From Leidyana gryllorum EB-2025a (Eukaryota; Protista; Apicomplexa), in the NCBI GenBank assembly GCA_048772705.1, contig JBLWGC010000082.1, forward strand, positions 62,001-126,000: a stretch of 64,000 bases of DNA, given 5' to 3'. Below, in pieces: positions 2,943 through 15,002 of this stretch. How positions within the stretch are numbered: the stretch's first letter is position 1; each line of letters starts with the position of its first letter. Under the pieces are notes generated by a model. That model was not told the origin of the DNA and did no database searches. It worked only from the letters and a program-made list of their open reading frames with translations. The position numbers and the translations under genes were made by a program.

Positions 2943-5120
2943 TCAGGCCTTCACCTTGTTGAAGCTGACAGCAAATCCACCGCCTGAAGCCACCCACTGA
3001 AGCAACTCTGAATCCTTGGTGACAACTTGCTCCCGGATGTCATAGGCGTGGGGATTGGTAGCGTAGTGGGCGGTGGGCGTGTCGTAATAAATCTTGGCGT
3101 GGTAATAAAATCCCTCATCGAGGAAATCGAGACTTATTCGGCAGTACCGGGGATCTTCGTTCGCTATGCTTCCGAGATACCAACTGTCCGAATGCTTGTC
3201 GAGTCGAGCGATAGTGAGGTAGGAACCCGGCTCGGCTTCGATATAGACCGACCGTTCCCAGTCCACAGGTACCTCTTTGATAAAATTGAAACCGCGTCCC
3301 ACGTGAGGTTGATAGTTGAAATAAGTGTCGGCAGCCATTTGCAGGGGACTGTACATAGTGACATAGAGGGCCAATTGTTTGGCAATGGTCGACTTGATCT
3401 TTTGCTGGTTGTTGGCCTGGGGGTTGACCCAAGATCCAAGATCGACGTTCATTATCCCAGGTGTATAGTCCATCGGGCCTCCAATCTGACGAGTGAAGGG
3501 GAGAATAGTCAGATGGTGAGGGTGATTGTCAGTGTACTCCTGGCCACGAGCAGACTCTTGAGCAATGAGGTTGGGGTAAGTACGGGACAGACCAGTGGGT
3601 CTGACGGCCTCGTGGGCGTTCACAGAAATATTGTACTTTATTGCCTCTTTGATACAGTAGAGATAGTGGTTCACCATGTCCTGACTGTAGTGGTGGTTGC
3701 CGTGGGGAAGCATATTGCCCACATATCCACTCTTCACACTCTTGTAGCCGTGGTCGACCATGAACTCATAGGCGCGGTGGAGGTGACGCTCGTAGTTGCG
3801 AGTGGAACCGGAGCTTTCGTGGTGCATCATGAGCTCAATGTTCTTCTCCTTTGCATATTGAACCAGTTCCTCCAGCTTGAAGTCAGGGTAAGGCGTAACA
3901 AAGTCGAACACATAATCCTTCCAGTTACCGAACCAGTCTTCCCAGCCTACGTTCCATCCCTCTATAAGCAGAGCGTCGAAGCCGTGTTCGGCAGCAAAGT
4001 CCAAATAGGCAATCACATTCTTGGTCTCCGCACCGTGGTTGTTATGAGGCTCGACATTGTCATATTGGGTGACTCCCAGCTGCACTCCAGCAATATCGAA
4101 CGTGTAATCCCACCGGGAGTGACCAACAATCATCTCCCACCAGACTCCCATAAACTTGATGGGTTTGACCCATTCCTCCCACTTGAGGTCGGGGTCAGCG
4201 GGCTCGTTGAGGTTGTAAGTGATACGACTCGCCAGGATATCGGCACCGCTGCGACCGGCGATAATGGTACGCCAGGGGGTCACATTCGGCGCTTGAAGAT
4301 GAGCTTTGACGCCCACAGCGTCGGGGGTGAGATGAGACTCGAAGATCATATTCTCATCGTCCAGGTCGAGATGCATACAAGAGTAGTTCACCAAGGCCGC
4401 CTCGTGGATGTTGATGTAAATGCCATCGTCAGTTTTCATCTGAAGGGCAGTCTGCACACCCGTCTTGGAGAAAGGGTAAAACGACGCGTTGTCCTCGACA
4501 GCATTATCGTGCAGATAGCGAATATACGACAGGCGAGACGCGGTATACTGCCATTCCTGAGTGTCGTAGTCACCCGGAATCCACCAGGCACGATGGTCTC
4601 CGGTCAGGGCGAACTGAGTGCGTTCTTCCTTGACGTGGTAATAGATCAGATTGGGCTGAGCCGGGAACTCGTAGCGGAACCCGAGACCGTCATCGAAGAG
4701 ACGGAACCGAATGTTCATCTTCCGAGCTCGCTCATCTTTCTGTACCAGCCGAACCAGGAGCTCGTTATGGTAGTCCCGGATCTCTGATTCTTCACCCCAG
4801 TAGGGCTTCCACGTCTCATCGTGCTGCCTCCTCTCAGTCGCCGGGCCGTCAGCCGTATTGTACTCAAAGTTGTCGAACAGCGAGTCAGTTGGAGCGTCAG
4901 AGTTGGCGAAATCGCGGTCTCCAAACAACTCCAATCCCATACCACTCGGCAGAATGACTGGATCTGTACCGAGATCCAACGAATATGTAGGCCTTCCCGT
5001 CTCGCTGATCTCAAAGGTCATCGTCATCGTCCCCGCAGGGGACTGCAGAGTCTCCAGAGCATCGGCAGTCCAGCATTGCCAAACAAAAACTCCTATCAAT
5101 CCACCAGAAAAGCGTCTCAT
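2943..5120 (-). CDS. Glycoside hydrolase family 97 (inverting type), secreted; copy 2
   Basis: Same GH97 motifs (HHESS, KSGYVG, NAHEA, QESARGQEY). Start placed at the ATG of MRRFSGGLIGVFVWQCWTADA (signal peptide), not the non-ATG ORF-track start at 5159. Confidence 0.95.
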   Translation of the reverse strand: MRRFSGGLIGVFVWQCWTADALETLQSPAGTMTMTFEISETGRPTYSLDLGTDPVILPSGMGLELFGDRDFANSDAPTDSLFDNFEYNTADGPATERRQHDETWKPYWGEESEIRDYHNELLVRLVQKDERARKMNIRFRLFDDGLGFRYEFPAQPNLIYYHVKEERTQFALTGDHRAWWIPGDYDTQEWQYTASRLSYIRYLHDNAVEDNASFYPFSKTGVQTALQMKTDDGIYINIHEAALVNYSCMHLDLDDENMIFESHLTPDAVGVKAHLQAPNVTPWRTIIAGRSGADILASRITYNLNEPADPDLKWEEWVKPIKFMGVWWEMIVGHSRWDYTFDIAGVQLGVTQYDNVEPHNNHGAETKNVIAYLDFAAEHGFDALLIEGWNVGWEDWFGNWKDYVFDFVTPYPDFKLEELVQYAKEKNIELMMHHESSGSTRNYERHLHRAYEFMVDHGYKSVKSGYVGNMLPHGNHHYSQDMVNHYLYCIKEAIKYNISVNAHEAVRPTGLSRTYPNLIAQESARGQEYTDNHPHHLTILPFTRQIGGPMDYTPGIMNVDLGSWVNPQANNQQKIKSTIAKQLALYVTMYSPLQMAADTYFNYQPHVGRGFNFIKEVPVDWERSVYIEAEPGSYLTIARLDKHSDSWYLGSIANEDPRYCRISLDFLDEGFYYHAKIYYDTPTAHYATNPHAYDIREQVVTKDSELLQWVASGGGFAVSFNKVKA

Positions 5121-5527
5121 CAGAAATTGCACAAGACCGCTCCGACAGGGGGAGCGCACTGTGTGCGGTGTCTCCAGCTGCTACACGGAGACTGGCATGG
5201 ACAATTCTACCTGCCTTTGTCGCGTTTCCAAAACACGCCGGTAGGGTACCGTAAGAAGTGTTAGATGGTGGAAGAACATAGTCTGGAATCAATTTTCAGT
5301 TAGTTTTGAGGTCAATTGCAGTACATCACAAAAACTTGACTGCTTACAAAGGTTATATGTATAGAGCGCGGACTTTGGAACCAGAACCCTTTCGTTGCCG
5401 CGATTACTCGGTCGATCGATCACTGCATCCCAGTTGATCGCAGTCAAACAATCAGAAGGGCGTATAAAAAACTGATCGAATCAATATCTTGAGCGAAAGC
5501 TCTTAAGCCATTCGGTGTGTGTTAGAG

Positions 5528-7753
5528 TTAGCTTCTCTCAATCTTCTTGAAGCTGGCAGCGAAACCACCACCAGAGGCAGTCCATTGGAGGAACTCAGAT
5601 CCCTTGGTGACCACAACCTCGCGAATGTCATAAGCATGCGGGTTAGTCCAATAGTGGGCACCCGGGAGATCGTAGTAAATTTTGGCCAGGTAGAACTCTC
5701 CCTCGGTCAAGAAATCGAGGTTGAGACGCACGTACCTTGGTTCCAAGGAGTTCACATTGCCCATGAACCAGTTGTCGCTGTTCTTGTCGAGTCTGGCGAT
5801 GGTGACATACGAGCCCGGCTCAGCCTCAAGGTACACCGAGCGCTTCCAGTCCACCGGGACGTCTTTGATGAAGGTGAAGGCACGGTCCACATGAGGCTGG
5901 TAGTTTTCCACGGTGTCAGCGGCCATTTGCAGGGGACTATACATTGTGACATAGAGTCCGAGCTGGTTGGCGATGGTGGAGTTGACTTTGGCTTCGAGGT
6001 CCACGTCGTCCTCGTGACGAGTGCTCGGGTCCTTGTCGATCCACTCGAAAATGTCCATGTTGAACACACCTGGCGTGTAATCCATGGGGCCACCGAGTTG
6101 ACGGGTGAAGGGAAGGATAGTGACATGGTGGGGGTGATTGCCGTTCTCGAAAGCCTGGTACTCCTGGCCACGAGCAGATTCTTGCGCGAGCAGGTTGGGG
6201 TAAGTACGGGAGAGACCAGTGGGTCTGACGGCCTCGTGGGCGTTCACAGAAATATTGTATTTGACGGCCTCCTGGACACAGTAAAGATAGTGGTTCACCA
6301 TGTCCTGACTGTAGTGGTGGTTGCCGTGGGGAAGCATATTGCCCACATATCCACTCTTCACACTCTTGTAGCCGTGTTCGACCATGAACTCATAGGCGCG
6401 GTGGAGGTGACGCTCGTAGTTGCGAGTGGAACCGGAGGTCTCATGGTGCATCATCAACTTGATGCCCAGCTCTTGGGCGAGATCGGTCAGATGTTCCAGC
6501 TTAAAGTCCGGGTACGGCGTGACGAAATCGAACACGTACTCCTTCCAGTTGCCGAACCAATCCTCCCATCCCTCATTCCAGCCTTCGACAAGAAGAGCAT
6601 CGAAGCCGTGCTCGGCAGCGAAGCGGAGGTACTTCTCCACGTTGTCAGTAGTGGCGCCATGAATGTTGTGGGGCGTGAGCTCGGCATAATTAGTTTCGCC
6701 GAGCTTGACACTTTCCACGTCACGAGTGTAATCCCATCTGCGGTGGTCAGTGATCATTTCCCACCAGACTCCCATGTACTTGACAGGCTTGACCCACTCT
6801 TCCCATTTAACTGACGGGTCAGCCGGTTCGTTGAGGTTGTAAGTGATGCGACTGGCGAGGATGTCGGTTGCTTTGCGGCCAGCAATGACGGTTCTCCACG
6901 GGGTTACGTTGGGCGCTTGGAGGTGAGCCTTGACGCCAACGGCATCAGGAGTGAGGTGCGACTCAAAAATCATGTTGGTGTCGTCAACAGTGAGATGCAT
7001 ACAGGAGTAGTTGACAAGAGCGGCCTCGTGAATATTGATGTAGATACCCTCATCGGTCTTCAATTGGAGTGCAGTTTGGACTCCAGTAGGACCGAAGGGG
7101 TATGCTGCGACGTTCTCCTCGAGAGCATCGTAGTACAGGTGACGGATATAAGACATACGGGAAGACTGGTAGTTCCACTCCTGAGTATCGTAGTCACCCG
7201 GGATCCACCAAACATGATGATCTCCGGTCATAGCGAATTGGGTGCGTTCTTCCTTGACGTGGTAATAGATCAGATTGGGCTGAGCCGGGAACTCGTAGCG
7301 GAACCCGAGACCTTCATCAAAGAGTCGGAACCGAATGTTCATCTTCCGACTCCGCTCATCATCCTGCACCAGACGAACGAGGAGTTCGTTGTGATAGTCG
7401 CGAATCTCGTCTTCTTCACCCCAGTAGGGCTTCCACGTCTCATCGTGCTCCCTCCTCTCCGTTGCCGCACCCTCAGCAGTGTTCAAGACAAAGTTGTCGT
7501 AAAGCGAATCACTTGGGGCGTCAGAGTTGGCAAAGTCCCTGTCTCCAAATAGCTCCAAACCCATACCACTGGGCAGAATAACTGGATCCTCTCCCAAAAA
7601 TAGCGAGTAGGTGGGGCGTCCAGTATCCGAGAGATCGAATGTAAGCGTCATCGCCCCCTCTGGAGACGTCAAAGTTAGAGGGAGAGATGTTTGTTGGCCA
7701 TTGGCTGATTGCCACGAGAGAAGCCCGAACACTTGGAGTGAGAACCACTTCAT
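5528..7753 (-). CDS. Glycoside hydrolase family 97 (inverting type), secreted; copy 3
   Basis: 741 aa with signal peptide. LVEGWNEGWEDW, HHETSG, KSGYVG, NAHEA and QESARGQEY are all intact. Confidence 0.95.
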   Translation of the reverse strand: MKWFSLQVFGLLSWQSANGQQTSLPLTLTSPEGAMTLTFDLSDTGRPTYSLFLGEDPVILPSGMGLELFGDRDFANSDAPSDSLYDNFVLNTAEGAATERREHDETWKPYWGEEDEIRDYHNELLVRLVQDDERSRKMNIRFRLFDEGLGFRYEFPAQPNLIYYHVKEERTQFAMTGDHHVWWIPGDYDTQEWNYQSSRMSYIRHLYYDALEENVAAYPFGPTGVQTALQLKTDEGIYINIHEAALVNYSCMHLTVDDTNMIFESHLTPDAVGVKAHLQAPNVTPWRTVIAGRKATDILASRITYNLNEPADPSVKWEEWVKPVKYMGVWWEMITDHRRWDYTRDVESVKLGETNYAELTPHNIHGATTDNVEKYLRFAAEHGFDALLVEGWNEGWEDWFGNWKEYVFDFVTPYPDFKLEHLTDLAQELGIKLMMHHETSGSTRNYERHLHRAYEFMVEHGYKSVKSGYVGNMLPHGNHHYSQDMVNHYLYCVQEAVKYNISVNAHEAVRPTGLSRTYPNLLAQESARGQEYQAFENGNHPHHVTILPFTRQLGGPMDYTPGVFNMDIFEWIDKDPSTRHEDDVDLEAKVNSTIANQLGLYVTMYSPLQMAADTVENYQPHVDRAFTFIKDVPVDWKRSVYLEAEPGSYVTIARLDKNSDNWFMGNVNSLEPRYVRLNLDFLTEGEFYLAKIYYDLPGAHYWTNPHAYDIREVVVTKGSEFLQWTASGGGFAASFKKIERS

Positions 7754-8358: not shown

Positions 8359-10485
8359 TCAACAGCCTTTGTGATGGGAATGTCTGACGAGATGACAGAA
8401 GAAGCCTCCGTTTTCGGCCGTGACTATCGTTATGCGGTCTTTGCGGCGCACAGTGGTGGTGTTCTGAGTGTAAGATTCTGGATTGGTGGTATCAGTGAGA
8501 TCTGAATCGCTAAATATTGTGGCAATATAGTCGGAATTCCTGTCCAGGAAGTTGAGTGAGAAATCAACAACGCGGCGTTTTGTCGATGAAATCCCGGCAA
8601 TGAACCAGTCGCCTCGCTTGTTCGGGACTTTTCGAGCAACCGTGACGTACTGACCAATTTCTGCTTCCAAATACAAAGTGCGAGACCAGCGGGTCGGTAG
8701 GGCCTCTATGGTCGCAAGCAGAGGAGTGTGTGCCAATAAATTATCGGGAGTGTCAGCGACGAGCTGATTCGGAGAGTAAAGTACCACCAGGAGCGCGACT
8801 TGTTTGATTAACGATCCAAGTTGAGGGGCAAATGATAGACCATTAAGTCTGACAATGCCACCGCCGTATTCAACGGGTGCACCGATTAAATGGTTCCAGG
8901 GAAGAACAGTCGCGTGTGAATGTTTCGATTGACTATAAGTTGCTGAAAAATCGCCGTTGGTTTGGCCCAGAGTCGCGGAGAACAAATTTGGGTATCTCCT
9001 CGACAGACCTGTTGGCTTCAAGCCCACTTTAAAGGAGATTGCGAGTCTATTTTGGAGAGCTTCCTCAATGAGAGTGCGATAGTGAGCATTGGTGCGTTGG
9101 CTTCCGCGGTAAGCGCCGTTGCCCAGTTGGTGGGCGCCTTGATACTCGATCTTCACCGCCTTGTACTGATTGAGTTCGACGGTGCGCCTCAGCGCTGCGG
9201 ACGCTTTCCGACTGTACTCAGTGATGGCAGTACCAACTTGATAGTGGCGAATGAGTGATATGTTGCGATCCGCGGCGAACGATACAATCTGCTCCTCGTC
9301 AATGTCGGGGTACGGCTGGATAAAGTCGAACAGCACGTTCTTGTCGTCGCTAAGCCGCCAACTCTCCCAGCCTTCATTCCAGCCTTCGAAACTTACGGCG
9401 TCGAACCCGTGACGAGCAGCAAAATCAATATAAGTCATTATTCGCTCAGTGGTGGCTCCATGGCGATGATTGGGAGTCATCTCACCATAATCAGTGACGC
9501 CTATTTCTACCGGATCGTCCGTATAATGCCATGTCTTTTGACCAATCACCATTTCCCACCACACACCAACAGATTTGAGGGGCTGAATCCAAGTGGCATC
9601 GGCCACAACAGACTCTTCATTCAGATTATAGATCATATGACTCGTCAAGATGGCAGCGGGATCTCGCGTTACCATAACACTGCGCCACGGAGTAGTCACA
9701 GGACCGCTCAACACTCCGCTTGTAGTCGCACCGGCGTTGTCACGAGTTAAGTGTGCAGCAAAAGTCTGTGAGGCCGCGTCATATCTCAAATTCATGGAGG
9801 GGAAGATGTCGCCCCCAGCCTCATGAATGTTTATGTAAACCCCGTCTGCGCTCCTCATCGTGATAGGCGTACGTACAACAGAGTCGCTCTTCTCTACTTC
9901 GAGGAGCACAGACGATATAGCACTCAAATCAGACTCTATAAAAGTGTAATCATCCTTGGTGGCCGGAGCCCACCAAGCCCGATGGTCGCCTCGTACTCTG
10001 AATTCAGTCCGCTCGGCCAATATTGGTTCTTCAAACAGTGTCTCCTGCTCTGGAAACTCCATGTTGAAGGCAATGCCAATATCATAGGCTCGTAAATTTA
10101 TCAATACTTGCCGACGGATCGGACGACTTTGAGTGGCCCGGATGGTCAACTGGTTGTAGTGATCTTCAACAACACTCTGCTCACCCCAAACCGGGCGCCA
10201 TTCTTCTCGTGGCATAGAGTAGAACGGAATCATTCCAGACATCACCCAACCGTCGTACAGTGAACTCTCCGGGTACCCGCCTGTCGCTAACTCGAATCCA
10301 ATGCGACTGAATGGTATAACTATCTCAGAACCCAACCTCACTTGATAACTGATCACACCGTCGTCGTCAATCTTCAGAGTACCAGTAACATTCTCGTTCG
10401 GTGAAGGCATATCGTACATCACCGCACCTCTCACCACTGTAAGGCACAACAACAACAGTAATAGCAGATTATGCCCATTATACAT
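8359..10485 (-). CDS. Divergent GH97-family protein with remodelled active site; copy 4
   Basis: 708 aa with Leu-rich signal peptide. GH97 scaffold motifs (RAYDIGIAF, INIHEAG, TPWRSV, VWWEM, EGWNEGW, KPTGLSRRYPN, LEAEIGQYVTVARK) are present, but the catalytic Glu motifs are replaced. Confidence 0.88.
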   Translation of the reverse strand: MYNGHNLLLLLLLCLTVVRGAVMYDMPSPNENVTGTLKIDDDGVISYQVRLGSEIVIPFSRIGFELATGGYPESSLYDGWVMSGMIPFYSMPREEWRPVWGEQSVVEDHYNQLTIRATQSRPIRRQVLINLRAYDIGIAFNMEFPEQETLFEEPILAERTEFRVRGDHRAWWAPATKDDYTFIESDLSAISSVLLEVEKSDSVVRTPITMRSADGVYINIHEAGGDIFPSMNLRYDAASQTFAAHLTRDNAGATTSGVLSGPVTTPWRSVMVTRDPAAILTSHMIYNLNEESVVADATWIQPLKSVGVWWEMVIGQKTWHYTDDPVEIGVTDYGEMTPNHRHGATTERIMTYIDFAARHGFDAVSFEGWNEGWESWRLSDDKNVLFDFIQPYPDIDEEQIVSFAADRNISLIRHYQVGTAITEYSRKASAALRRTVELNQYKAVKIEYQGAHQLGNGAYRGSQRTNAHYRTLIEEALQNRLAISFKVGLKPTGLSRRYPNLFSATLGQTNGDFSATYSQSKHSHATVLPWNHLIGAPVEYGGGIVRLNGLSFAPQLGSLIKQVALLVVLYSPNQLVADTPDNLLAHTPLLATIEALPTRWSRTLYLEAEIGQYVTVARKVPNKRGDWFIAGISSTKRRVVDFSLNFLDRNSDYIATIFSDSDLTDTTNPESYTQNTTTVRRKDRITIVTAENGGFFCHLVRHSHHKGC

Positions 10486-11850
10486 CTTCCAAGTCTAGAG
10501 CAGTTGAGAGAGGTAGGGGCAGATCGACAAAAAAGTCAAACCAACTGTCCACTTGGCAATGGAAGCGCAACACTCAACGTGCCAACCATTCCATTCACCG
10601 AAATGGTGTCCCAACGCGTCACCGCACACAACGTCACTACGGAGACGCGGAGAGCTCAAGAGAGGCCCCACAGAGAAGTAAGACAGAGCACAGAGATATT
10701 TGAGCTATCGAATGTACCCCAACCTTGTCTGCATGTGGACCAATGTTGATGGGTGTACAGTGAGGGTGTGATGACGTGTATGAGTAATCAAATGCGATGC
10801 GTGTTCAACGAACTTGCGGGCGCGCGCCGCGCTTCTGTGTGTGCAGACAGCACACGCAACCCTTGTGTCGCACATTGCGCTTCGAGTTGGCTTGAGAGCA
10901 TCTGGCGTTCTGGTGTTCAGCAGCTCTTGCTCAGTGACTTGAAGAGGAGACACACACACACGCACACACAACTTTGATATTGTAAATGCACACACTACAC
11001 TTGAAATGACAGTGCTCTTGCACGTGGCCCAATTGTTGGTCATTGTCAGGGGGGTTTGACACAATCAATCTATCAACTTGGAGGAAGAGTGTAGGTAATC
11101 GACCGGATGTACTGTTGTTAAATTGTGTGATACGAACGAATGTAATGATATGAATGTCTGTCTCTCTGCCTTTGACGACAGCAGATCTTCTTCCTTCTTC
11201 CCTTTTGGCGGGGTAGATGTGCATGTGTGTGTATGTCGATGGACTAGCTTTGTGGACTCGCGTCTGTTCTTATGACTGCGTTAGTAAGCGGGAAGAGATT
11301 GAGAGGCTCGGCTGTCATCGAGTCTCGCAGTCGTCACACGTGGGAGAGGTTTTGAATGAGAATCAGAAGGAAGTGATCAGGAGGAGTATAGGGTGACATG
11401 CGGCGAACAAACGGCGGCGGCAAGAGGGCTGACCACCGACACCGTTAAGTCAGTGCAACGCACGGCCAACACCGATCCGAAAAGTTGATTCGGATGGAAA
11501 AATGTCATTGTCAGGAGTGTGGGAATAGTAAATTGAGCGGCGAATGAGAAGTAGAAAGAGCAGTGTGAACGGAAGATGAGCATAAGCGGGAATCGCGTAC
11601 GAAAGCCAGAGACAAAAAGGCGACAGAGAATCGCTCTCAGTCCCACAAAGATTCAGTAAGGGGCCGCCAAGCGCTCACAAGATACAACAGGCAGAAAGCG
11701 ATCAGATGTTGTAGTATTGGTACACAAGAGCGTACTATATCAGATTGTTAAGTGTCGATTCGATCGATTATGTATAGAGAAAGAAATAAGAACTCGCGCG
11801 GGATTTGAATGCAAGAAACAAAGAGCGTATGTGTGAGGCGAGTATCCGAG

Positions 11851-11890
11851 GGAGTGAGTGAGTGAATGAATGAGTGAGTGAGTGAGTGAA
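11851..11890. repeat. (GAGT/GAAT)n tetranucleotide microsatellite
   Basis: gagtgagtgagtgaatgaatgagtgagtgagtgagtgaa. Confidence 0.75.
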
Positions 11891-12536
11891 TGTGTCATTT
11901 CACGCTTTAAACTAGCCCTATCCGGGCTCAACACCCCTGGCCGAGAGCGGAGCTTGTGTCATTGTCTTGAGAAATTATAATTGGAAGGAAACCGATGGCG
12001 ACTTCCAGCGCGCATCATTCCGTCCAACTCAAGTATAATCTGATCATCAAGCGTATCAAAATTGGGTTGTGTGTGTTTGGTAAGTGTGTGCAATCGATAG
12101 ATCGGTGGGTGATTTTGTCAGTTTGAGGAGCACGAGAAGCGTCAATTGCATAAATCACGCGGTGAGGGTCCACAGAAGCACCATAAAACGGCGGGCGACA
12201 CACGGAATGCAAAATGTTGTCCCCTCGTTGGCGGGGGTATGCGACTGGCCGGCCATGTAACAGTAGTCGCCCCCCATGAGGTTCACAAGAGCGTGTGAAC
12301 GCTTGAGAGAGGATATCAGAATAGCATATCAACAGCAGCAATATTAAATCGGACAATGGAAGATTTAAAGCAACTGGTATTGAGCTTACTTCGCGGTGAT
12401 GTAAAAATCGAGAACGAAAAACAGTAAGTAGTGGGCCTAATGGGCTCTCCTACGGATGGCAGCTTTGGGGCATCGCGTACTCGGAGAGGAGATTCTGCAA
12501 GAGGAGAGACAATGGAGTGTGAGGGGAGCGAGCGGA

Positions 12537-15002
12537 TTACTTGGTGATTTTAGCTGCGTAGCCGCCACCGGGTGCGATATGGACTCGCGTAACTGAATCG
12601 GACTTGATGACCTGACTGATAGTGTTGTATGCTGTTGGATTGTCAAGGTAGTGCGCGTTTGGGGTGTCATAGTAGGCAGTGGCTTGATAGTATTGTTGGT
12701 TGTCGAGAAACTGGTAGGTTAATTCGAAGTCGTAGCCGTTTGGGCCGGCAATGGCTCCTACATACCAATCGTCTGTTTGCTTGTCTTTGCGGGCAACGAC
12801 GATGTGAGAGCCAGGTTCAGCTTGCAGGTGTAAGGTACGCTCCCAGGCCACAGGTACATCTTTTATGAACTGGAATGCCCGTGATTTGTGTCGCGCGTAG
12901 TTTTCGGGTAAGTCGGCTGCCATTTGCAGTGGACTATAGAGGACAACGTAGAGAGCAAGTTGGTACGCGATAGTGGATCCGTTATGTTGATTGGAAGCGT
13001 GCAGAAGACCAGGAGCGAAGTCTATGGGTCCACCAATACCGTGTGTGAATGGCAATATGGTGGCCTGGCTGGGGTCGGGTCCGCCGTTCGTGCTAGCTGG
13101 TGTAGCGGCCAATAGATGCGGAAAGGTTCGTGACAATCCGGTGGGCTTGAGTGCGTTGTGCACGTTGAGATGAATATTATACGGGATAGCAGCCTTAAGA
13201 GCATACAAATAGTGATCAATCATATACTGTGAGAGTCTGTAGGGCGAGTTTGGACTCATGTTGGGATAGTAGTCAGTCTTGACGACTGACGATCCGTGTT
13301 TGCGCATGAATTGGTATGCTCGGTGTAGTTGGCGTTCGTAGTAGGAGACAGCAGCTGCAGGATGATGTAGCATCAGTTGAACGCCTCGCCGCGCCGCGTG
13401 CTGACTGAGAGCATCGATGTCAAAGTCAGGGTAAGGAGTCGTAAGGTCAAAGATGTCTCCGGCTGCAGGTCCGCTGCGGCCAAAGTTCTCCCATCCGACA
13501 TTCCAACCCTCCGTTAGCACTGCGTCGAAGCCATTCTCGGCTGCAAACTCAATGTACTCCCGAACGCGTTCGGTGGTTGCGCCGTGTCTTCCATGCGGGT
13601 GGACTAACGAGTAATTGGTGGACCCCAAGCGTACAAATTCGTCGGTGTAGTCCCACCGACGTTGACCAATCATCAACTCCCACCAAATGCCCACATACTT
13701 CATAGGCCGAACCCATTCCGTACTTTTAAGCGCACAGGGCTCATTCAATGCGTAGATCAGTCGACTTCCCAGAATCTCGCGAGCATCTCGAGTAATCATA
13801 ACTGTGCGCCATGGAGATTTTCCCCCTTTTCGAACAATCGCCGCTGGCGCGCCAGCAGCAACACTCGTACTTTTTATGGTCCCAGTCGTCGTTGTAGTCG
13901 CGATTGCAGCGCCGCCTGTCCCCACTCGCCCTCCGCTGGGGGTCAAGTGTGCTGCCAAAGTGTAAACGGTGGATTCCAGGTGGCTGGCAGCAGCCGAGGA
14001 GGCGAGATATGTGTTAGAACTCGTCGTCATCGTTGGCCATTGGGTGCTTCTTGGGGCGCCAAGAAGAAGGGTGCTCTTGTGTTCAGTAAAAGAAGAAGCT
14101 TTTTCATCGAGGAATCGATCACTCGAAGCGCGGACGTTCTCGTCGGCGTTGGCGTCGCGGTTGTAGTCCTCTTCGTGGTCGGAGGTGAAGTCTGGTGTAG
14201 CAGTATAGGGGTGGCGCAGTCTCGAGATCTCATCAGTGTCAGAAGTGTAGCTGTCACCACGTATTGCAGCGGCGTGGGACCCACCCGTGGGTGGGACCAC
14301 CCGCAGGTGCATTGCCGGAAAGTTAACCAATGAGGCCTCGTGGATGTTAATGTAGAGACCTCGACTCGTCTTCATTTGAATCGGGGTCTGGACGCGCGCT
14401 ACTGTGGCATCGTCATAATGATAGGGATTCGCTTCTGCTGGCGTCTTCAACCTGATTTCACTTAACGGAGACCCGTGGAACTTCTGATGGACGGCATCAT
14501 AGTCTCCGTTCGTCCACCAACCAAAGTGATCATCGAGAACACGGAACTCCGTCTTCTCGTCAGCTATCCGCGCAGAGTTCTCAAACTCATAACGGAAAGC
14601 CACACCTATGTCGTAGGCTCGGAAACGCAAACCCAGTCTCTCCTCGCTTCCCGCAGCCTCAAGTCGCACATACAACTCATTGTACTCCAAGGATATTCGT
14701 CCAGTCTCTTCTCCCAACACAGAGTCCCATTCATCCTTGGACTTGTCCAATGACGACACCGTCATTGTATCCCATTCCCACAAAGCTGAGCCCTCTGTCA
14801 TCTCAAAGCCCAAAGCACTCGTGCCAATCGCAAGTTCGTCCTCGTACCACACTTCATAACGCAAAACACTATCAGCAAACAGCCCGATTACACCCGTGAT
14901 CGATCCATCCACCGACTTAACTTCGACACGCGATCGCCAAGCCTCATCAGAGCCGAAAGCGATAGCAGTGTACACCAAGCCCCACACGCATACCCAACGC
15001 AT
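12537..15002 (-). CDS. Divergent GH97-family protein with low-complexity insertions and remodelled active site; copy 5
   Basis: 821 aa with signal peptide. FRAYDIGVAFRYEF, INIHEASLVN, SPWRTV, KYVGIWWE, TEGWNVGWE, TTPYPDFD, GGPIDFAPG, PLQMAADLPENY. Catalytic Glu motifs are replaced. Confidence 0.9.
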   Translation of the reverse strand: MRWVCVWGLVYTAIAFGSDEAWRSRVEVKSVDGSITGVIGLFADSVLRYEVWYEDELAIGTSALGFEMTEGSALWEWDTMTVSSLDKSKDEWDSVLGEETGRISLEYNELYVRLEAAGSEERLGLRFRAYDIGVAFRYEFENSARIADEKTEFRVLDDHFGWWTNGDYDAVHQKFHGSPLSEIRLKTPAEANPYHYDDATVARVQTPIQMKTSRGLYINIHEASLVNFPAMHLRVVPPTGGSHAAAIRGDSYTSDTDEISRLRHPYTATPDFTSDHEEDYNRDANADENVRASSDRFLDEKASSFTEHKSTLLLGAPRSTQWPTMTTSSNTYLASSAAASHLESTVYTLAAHLTPSGGRVGTGGAAIATTTTTGTIKSTSVAAGAPAAIVRKGGKSPWRTVMITRDAREILGSRLIYALNEPCALKSTEWVRPMKYVGIWWELMIGQRRWDYTDEFVRLGSTNYSLVHPHGRHGATTERVREYIEFAAENGFDAVLTEGWNVGWENFGRSGPAAGDIFDLTTPYPDFDIDALSQHAARRGVQLMLHHPAAAVSYYERQLHRAYQFMRKHGSSVVKTDYYPNMSPNSPYRLSQYMIDHYLYALKAAIPYNIHLNVHNALKPTGLSRTFPHLLAATPASTNGGPDPSQATILPFTHGIGGPIDFAPGLLHASNQHNGSTIAYQLALYVVLYSPLQMAADLPENYARHKSRAFQFIKDVPVAWERTLHLQAEPGSHIVVARKDKQTDDWYVGAIAGPNGYDFELTYQFLDNQQYYQATAYYDTPNAHYLDNPTAYNTISQVIKSDSVTRVHIAPGGGYAAKITK

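Follow-up and report, generated by a model that had tools for sequence, protein, structure and literature searches.

The question raised by this locus is what keeps a glycoside hydrolase in a genome once the residues that make it an enzyme have gone. In the 64,000-nucleotide stretch of the Leidyana gryllorum EB-2025a genome analysed here (contig JBLWGC010000082.1, positions 62,001 to 126,000; hereafter the window), five large open reading frames (ORFs), c1 to c5, lie head to tail on the minus strand as a single tandem array of GH97 genes. The fourth and fifth of these, c4 (8359-10485, minus strand, 708 aa) and c5 (12537-15002, minus strand, 821 aa), encode putatively secreted GH97 paralogues without catalytic glutamates. 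An earlier note made from the sequence of the window (the original prediction) had proposed that two paralogues share a rewired active site; the residue changes described there hold for c4 and c5, but the paralogues number three, as a search of the whole genome also turned up c6, a 724-codon frame on the minus strand of another contig (G000:C220, L005:1159-3333). This copy is not linked to the array, shares 63% identity with c4 and has lost the same glutamates, and it keeps an HG motif and the glycine (Gly469 in SusB numbering) that the proposed rewiring replaces. We regard c4, c5 and c6 as probably being secreted, catalytically inactive GH97 proteins, i.e., pseudo-glycosidases, that likely bind sugar.

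By sequence, c4 and c5 are full-length three-domain GH97 proteins, and for c4 the predicted fold says the same. All five array copies match GH97_N, Glyco_hydro_97 and GH97_C far above the Pfam cut-offs (25.3, 32.5 and 25 bits, respectively), with scores of 150.1, 167 and 84.6 bits for c4 and 161.1, 227.4 and 85.1 bits for c5. For the catalytic domain, c1-c3 reach about 300 bits and c6 scores low, like c4 and c5, and the GH97_C score is alike in all five array copies (80-86.5 bits in c1-c3). The AlphaFold2 model of c4 is confident (predicted local distance difference test, pLDDT, 90.1; predicted template modelling score 0.91), its least confident part being residues 514-516 in the loop after the motif TNG (pLDDT <50). 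The c5 model (pLDDT 83.1) has a core above 90 and two inserts predicted to be disordered, namely a low-complexity insertion at residues 244-342 (13977-14273, minus strand, pLDDT <50) and a second, shorter one at residues 360-382 (13857-13925, minus strand). In Foldseek comparisons, the c4 model matched the Flavobacterium johnsoniae GH97 structure 8WG0 with a template modelling (TM) score of 0.92-0.95 and a root-mean-square deviation (rmsd) of 1.9 A, and SusB with a TM score of 0.91; the match to the retaining enzyme BT1871 was weaker (TM 0.77, 20% identity). The claim that both ORFs are full length on a conserved scaffold thus stands, on their lengths, the three Pfam domains and the confident models. 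Erosion confined to particular domains was considered and rejected, as there is only a slight excess of change in the barrel and the C domain is only slightly better kept, in identity to consensus.

The chemistry of the family is well described. In SusB, Glu439 is the general base (E439A lowers activity 250,000-fold), Glu532 is the general acid, and the activity of E508A is unmeasurable; the Ca2+ ligands of GH97 are Glu194, Glu508 (in the inverting type), Glu526 and Glu532, and Glu526 and Glu532 are absolutely conserved across all GH97s, retaining members included (Gloster et al. 2008, PMC2670981). Inverting members carry K(T/S)GY where retaining members carry (K/M)(I/V)DF, in which the nucleophile aspartate occupies the position of Gly469 (PMC2670981). 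To place the Leidyana copies against this background, a MAFFT alignment was made of the six copies with 234 bacterial homologues from protein searches, in SusB numbering verified against the 2D73 chain. Glu194, Glu439, Glu508, Glu526, Glu532 and Gly469 are invariant in all 234 bacterial homologues and in c1-c3. At positions 194, 439, 508, 526, 532 and 469, in that order, c4 has D, Q, V, T, G or D, and E; c5 has H, P, N, T, G or a gap, and D; and c6 has D, Q, G, T, A or a gap, and G. Asp512 of c4 can be aligned with either position 532 or position 533, according to where one gap is placed.

None of the three copies therefore retains a GH97 Ca2+ site, the four ligand positions (194/508/526/532) reading D, V, T, G (or D) in c4, H, N, T, G in c5 and D, G, T, A in c6. 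The inverting-type motifs HHET, HE and K(T/S)GY read HYQV, KV and KIEY in c4, HHPA, HN and KTDY in c5, and HHQV, HG and KVGY in c6, so that the set fails as a set in all three and c6 alone has the glycine of the last motif. In c4, Gln416 (9238-9240, minus strand) replaces the general base Glu439 (HHE to HYQ), Val487 (9025-9027, minus strand) replaces Glu508 (AHEA to FKVG), and the stretch that in canonical copies supplies Ca2+ ligands and the general acid (N/Q-E526-SARG-T-E532-Y) has become the remodelled loop ATLGQTNGD (8950-8976, minus strand). In c5, the corresponding changes are Pro548 for Glu439 (13359-13361, minus strand; HHE to HHP), Asn616 for Glu508 (13155-13157, minus strand; AHEA to VHNA) and, for the Glu526 to Glu532 loop, ATPASTNGG (13080-13106, minus strand), which is six to seven residues shorter. 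At the Gly469 column, which is also that of the retaining nucleophile, c4 has Glu447 (codon GAG, 9145-9147, minus strand) and c5 has Asp577 (codon GAC, 13272-13274, minus strand), where c1-c3 have GGA and c6 has GGC. All of the motif replacements that had been reported for c4 and c5 were reproduced exactly in this alignment, as were the positions of the two codons. The assignment of the carboxylate to the retaining-nucleophile position also agrees with the published comparison (Gloster et al. 2008, PMC2670981), since 17 retaining-type representatives (K-I/V-D-F/Y with HG, among 150) have Asp in the same column; these 17 keep Glu194, Glu526 and Glu532.

The losses reach beyond the five glutamates: c4, c5 and c6 are also without Gly530 and Arg552, two residues that retaining GH97s conserve as well, and the replacements E526T, G530T and R552H are common to all three. 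Only 10 of the 95 columns that are invariant in the bacterial homologues are altered in all three degenerate copies, and half of these are the five glutamates (hypergeometric p = 4e-6), so the loss of the active site goes beyond chance. On the alignment, the O2, O6 and anomeric side of the site (Ca2+, Glu439, Glu508 and Glu532) is dismantled, and the catalytic features that define the inverting subfamily are missing from the three copies, as are those that define the retaining one. What is kept lies elsewhere in the pocket: Trp331, Glu391 and Lys467 are present in all three copies and His507 in c5 and c6. In SusB, Trp331, Glu391 and Lys467 bind O3 and O4 of the -1 sugar (PMC2670981).

The state reached by these copies has been held by selection. 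Between c4 and c6, the nonsynonymous divergence (dN) is 0.274 and the synonymous divergence (dS) is saturated (the NG86 estimate is undefined), with the same codon used at only 47% of the positions where the residue is identical. As both copies are already without the catalytic set, the loss of the glutamates is older than the c4/c6 split. Although the three proteins differ from the active copies at 55-65% of their amino acids, the frames of 708, 724 and 821 codons are unbroken. The bacterial consensus is kept at 65%, 70% and 82% of the 95 invariant columns in c4, c6 and c5, respectively, and at about 13-19% of the variable columns, with retention declining smoothly with family conservation in all three copies, which is the signature of a constrained fold.

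The remodelled loop tells the same story. The three copies share the signature AT-xxx-TN, a shared-derived feature absent from the 234 bacterial homologues and found among other unique changes near the former catalytic centre; they have in common A525, T526, T530, H552, L510 and K511, found in none of the 234 bacterial sequences, and 6 of the 11 unique shared-derived residues specific to the three copies fall within SusB positions 508-552 (p = 2e-5). That the loop has been kept since the deep split between c5 and c4/c6 (36% overall identity) argues for constraint on a new state of the pocket. We consider it well supported that the degenerate copies are held by purifying selection in a selected, non-catalytic status and are not decaying. 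Both the signature as a true shared feature and the call of selection rather than decay had been part of the original prediction, and both are borne out, the latter by the c4/c6 divergence (dN 0.27 with dS saturated), the graded retention, the AlphaFold2 models and the transcript-like sequences described below.

Those sequences come from a public run of a related organism (X1). Contigs from X1 over 12390-13439 are 96-97% identical to c5, and one of them joins the sequence across two gaps. The first corresponds to a 46-nt GT..AG intron (12495-12540, minus strand; GTAA, a polypyrimidine stretch and CAG in the genome) that takes out the genomic stop codon of c5, and the second, in the same contig, to a 350-nt GT..AG intron in the c5 3' untranslated region (UTR) (12040-12389, minus strand; GTAAG to CAG). 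As both gaps are introns on the strand of c5, X1 contains RNA, and c5 is transcribed and spliced in the relative. Exon-by-exon translation by reference shows that exon 2 of the spliced gene extends the protein by 18 residues, up to a TAG at 12437-12439; with the genomic stop sitting in the 46-nt intron, plain ORF calling gives the wrong C-terminus for c5. Indels of X1 in the second, shorter insert of c5 are of 3 and 12 nt and in frame. Those in an X1 contig from the c4-c5 intergenic region (11035-11516, about 92% identical) are of 1-3 nt and do not keep frame. The X1 contigs that resemble c4 (9363-10398) are 84-87% identical to it, and 29 of the 40 listed differences fall at codon position 3 (p = 5e-7), which marks the c4-like sequence, as read from these differences, as a coding-constrained gene. 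The divergence of the c4-like contigs, set against the 96-97% of c5, may reflect a different c4-type paralogue in X1, or a c4 that was converted or replaced in one lineage.

A maximum-likelihood tree (LG+C20, quick search) with its root among retaining-type sequences places the six copies together in a single clade (support 92), deep inside the SusB-like Bacteroidota enzymes, and this clade splits into two sisters, (c1,c2,c3) with support 99 and (c5,(c4,c6)) with support 97. The branches are long, at 2.2 substitutions per site for the c4/c6 stem and 1.4-2.3 for c5. When c4/c6 were removed from the tree, c5 still grouped with c1-c3 (support 94). The clade of three degenerate copies is independently supported by the shared-derived residues that are absent from the 234 bacterial sequences. 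All six copies have, moreover, an Arg at SusB position 294 that never occurs in the bacterial homologues; a six-copy clade within Bacteroidota enzymes together with unique shared residues suggests that the gene was acquired horizontally once and then duplicated. Among the bacterial sequences in the tree, the closest to the copies is P0161, which comes from a short contig of bacterial appearance. Acquisition of the degenerate state itself from bacteria was considered and rejected, as the 150 best representatives hold only scattered, unrelated degenerates (29-36% identity to the three copies). Public GH97s of this scattered kind, lacking parts of the glutamate/Ca2+ centre, are P0277, P0291, P0293, P0303 and P0319.

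Searches for orthologues of the degenerate copies matched only canonical bacterial GH97s, whether c4 and c5 were used as queries against a word-indexed library of 5.8 billion proteins, a profile of c4, c5 and c6 was run against a library of 1.84 billion representatives, or c4 was searched against metagenome contigs. Identity to c4 never exceeded 38%, and identity to c5, over half its length, never exceeded 49%. A eugregarine thus carries a Bacteroidota-derived, SusB-type inverting alpha-glucosidase gene that has been amplified in tandem. One duplicate lineage lost the Ca2+/glutamate centre before splitting into c5 and c4/c6, after which the GH97 fold has been maintained by purifying selection, with at least c5 transcribed and spliced in a close relative.

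Taken together, these observations favour pseudo-glycosidases, and the following marks of a pseudoenzyme are found: essential catalytic residues lost, purifying selection after the loss, and expression, the last seen in X1 only. Without Ca2+ ligands, a general acid or a general base, c4, c5 and c6 would not be expected to hydrolyse glycosides. With Trp331, Glu391 and Lys467 still in place and the remodelled loop itself conserved, the pocket most likely still binds sugar; in the host gut, the proteins may bind glycans in the manner of lectins or sense them, or they may serve as non-catalytic partners of c1-c3. Several observations weigh against this reading. Sugar binding is deduced from three kept contacts that could be structural instead. 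X1 is one public run from one study of a related organism, its kind guessed as RNA and its RNA nature taken from the splicing, and its c4-like contigs, only about 84% identical, may belong to a paralogue and not to the orthologue of c4. No c5 orthologue for a codon branch test was found in the two protein libraries. When c5 was removed from the tree, c4/c6 floated within the crown group, so the joining of c4/c6 with c5 rests partly on long branches. Lastly, the carboxylate on strand beta4 and the Asp that follows TNG, present in c4 and c5 and both absent in c6, could mark a residual or new catalytic pair.

A first alternative keeps the proteins inactive and takes away the sugar: the dead copies would bind no glycan, and would pair with c1-c3 through their conserved N- and C-terminal (oligomerisation) domains to modulate activity, stability or localisation. 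The array genes stand in tandem on one strand and all copies have signal-peptide-like leaders, i.e., hydrophobic N-terminal leaders in c4, c5 and c6 and similar ones in c1-c3. The GH97_C scores of c4 and c5 match those of c1-c3 while the catalytic domain drops from about 300 to 167 and 227 bits. However, identity to consensus is only marginally higher in the C domain than in the barrel, c6 is unlinked to the array, and the clustering of derived residues in the pocket argues for constraint on the pocket and not on interfaces alone. We therefore think it unlikely that partnership without glycan binding accounts for these genes.

The second alternative takes the new carboxylate at face value. Here c4 and/or c5 would be active glycosidases or transglycosidases that work without Ca2+, with Glu447 or Asp577 as nucleophile or base and Asp512 or Asp643 as acid/base, the latter two being the Asp found just after TNG in c4 and c5 and not in c6; this would amount to a second, independent switch in GH97 from inverting to retaining style. 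The carboxylate does occupy the exact column of the retaining nucleophile, and set against the motif (K/M)(I/V)DF, the KTDY of c5 has the Asp, the KIEY of c4 has Glu in its stead and the KVGY of c6 has neither. Among 443 bacterial columns that are nearly free of acidic residues, c5 has gained an acid in 7 and c4/c6 in 15, and position 469 is the sole column in which the gains of the two lineages converge; this overlap of 1 against 0.24 expected is notable for a column specified beforehand but not significant after the fact, or when the column is chosen blind to the genome. The independently degenerate P0277 likewise pairs HN with Asp at 469, as c5 does, and both the conservation of the remodelled loop over the deep c5 versus c4/c6 split and the evident purifying selection would fit a working site.

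Against such a site, c6, equally constrained, 63% identical to c4 and its nearest relative, has retained Gly469 and carries no loop acid, so that the most parsimonious history has a carboxylate arising twice independently; the residue gained also differs, being Glu in c4 and Asp in c5. A change from Gly to Asp or Glu is within reach of one G-to-A transition at the second codon position, and the degenerate GH97s P0291, P0293 and P0303 have no acid at 469. The acid/base and Ca2+ set of the retaining type is missing: Glu526 and Glu532, absolute in every GH97 (PMC2670981), are lost in all three copies together with Glu194, Gly530 and Arg552, and the HG motif occurs in c6 only. At positions 391 and 437, which also discriminate between the subfamilies, the three copies have Glu and His, the inverting state, where retaining enzymes have Asp391 and Trp437. 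A broad convergence on the retaining subfamily was considered and set aside, there being only four discriminating columns and a retaining-like state at most at 469 and 508, and R511K was discarded as a retaining hallmark because inverting representatives, too, most often have Lys at 511. We accordingly find an active, rewired c4 or c5 quite unlikely. Still less would we expect both c4 and c5 to be metal-free working enzymes, rebuilt from an inverting, Ca2+-dependent scaffold in a eukaryote after horizontal transfer, with c6 the only dead member, a version that we hold to be very unlikely. The acid at 469 is probably a cheap, lineage-specific replacement in a pocket that has lost five carboxylates and not a nucleophile, and it may compensate charge beside Lys467. 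The original prediction had left the choice between a pseudoenzyme and a new chemistry; of these, the pseudoenzyme is favoured, and the nucleophile chemistry is weak given the Gly of c6 and the loss of Glu526, Glu532, Gly530 and Arg552.

That the degenerate copies are instead relics, recently inactivated and functionless genes drifting into pseudogenes, would suit the loss of the entire catalytic apparatus, the very long branches and the disordered low-complexity inserts of c5, but this is largely refuted and extremely improbable in view of the intact, highly divergent frames, a c4/c6 dN far under dS after the loss, the graded conservation, and the third-position bias, in-frame indels and spliced transcript seen in the relative.

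How far the pseudo-glycosidases have moved from their family can be judged by comparison with known systems. The inverting, Ca2+-dependent enzymes SusB/BtGH97a and FjGH97A (2JKA, 2ZQ0, 8WG0) have the same three-domain fold (TM 0.91-0.95 and rmsd of about 2 A for the c4 model), are 32-37% identical to c4 and 43-49% to c5, and form the clade in which the three copies fall. Trp331, Glu391 and Lys467 are shared with them throughout, and His507 in c5 and c6. Unlike these enzymes, the three copies are without all five glutamates, Gly530 and Arg552, and Gly469 has become Glu in c4 and Asp in c5; with the glutamates replaced, no Ca2+ site, base or acid is left. Likeness to BtGH97b/BT1871 and the retaining GH97 alpha-galactosidases (3A24, 5E1Q) is confined to single features, namely the beta4 carboxylate of c4 and c5 two residues past the conserved Lys, the lack of Glu508 and of the HHET base in all three copies, and the HG of c6. 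The retaining enzymes, in contrast, keep Glu194, Glu526, Glu532, Ca2+, Asp391 and Trp437, where the three copies are without the glutamates and have Glu391 and His437; the fold match of c4 to them is only TM 0.77, and the three copies fall outside the retaining clade.

Six GH97 outliers with KXG(Y/F), HD/HE and Gln194 were suggested to be inactive or to use another apparatus (Gloster et al. 2008, PMC2670981). Those outliers are bacterial, fall on the retaining side of the tree and still have Glu526 and Glu532, whereas c4, c5 and c6 are eukaryotic, belong to the inverting half and have lost both. In the GH18 lectins and in rBAT/4F2hc, the fold was retained under selection after loss of the catalytic carboxylate, for a binding or partner role. 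The GH18 chitinase-like lectins and the GH13 proteins rBAT/4F2hc are cited as precedents for dead glycosidase folds (PMC2670981). Both families are unrelated to GH97, and their likeness to the three copies would serve as a working analogy. To our knowledge, no GH97 has been found to act as a binding or partner protein. In the library that we searched, no literature was found linking GH97 with gregarines or with pseudoenzymes.

The remaining members of the array are ordinary by comparison: c1 (416-2620), c2 (2943-5159) and c3 (5528-7753), all on the minus strand, are canonical SusB-like GH97s with all catalytic residues present. The spacer between c4 and c5 (10486-12536) is unusually long at 2 kb; its low-complexity stretches are CA-rich or short and tandem, and no ORF in it is convincing. 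The X1 contig mentioned above matches a part of this spacer (11035-11516), which given this coverage may be transcribed as UTR. The rest of the genes in the window are eukaryotic and include proteasome RPN2, a DEAD-box helicase, a metacaspase and a galactosyltransferase; the best named relatives of the helicase are from Gregarina sp. (56%), Blabericola migrator (53%) and G. niphandrodes (47%), which marks the host as a eugregarine. Around c6, no Pfam family was matched by the neighbouring ORFs.

GH97 is the textbook case of two mechanisms within one glycosidase family, and its Ca2+/Glu526/Glu532 core has been reported as absolute. The copies c4, c5 and c6 are three eukaryotic paralogues without that whole core that are nonetheless kept by selection, and the standing of active and dead copies in one array makes a clean natural system for the use of a glycosidase fold after catalysis is lost. 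Should the beta4 carboxylate be catalytic, it would be an independent replay of the inverting-to-retaining switch; should the pocket still bind alpha-glucans, the three would become the first lectin-like proteins to derive from GH97. The array could also show how a gut parasite of insects exploits an acquired bacterial carbohydrate gene.

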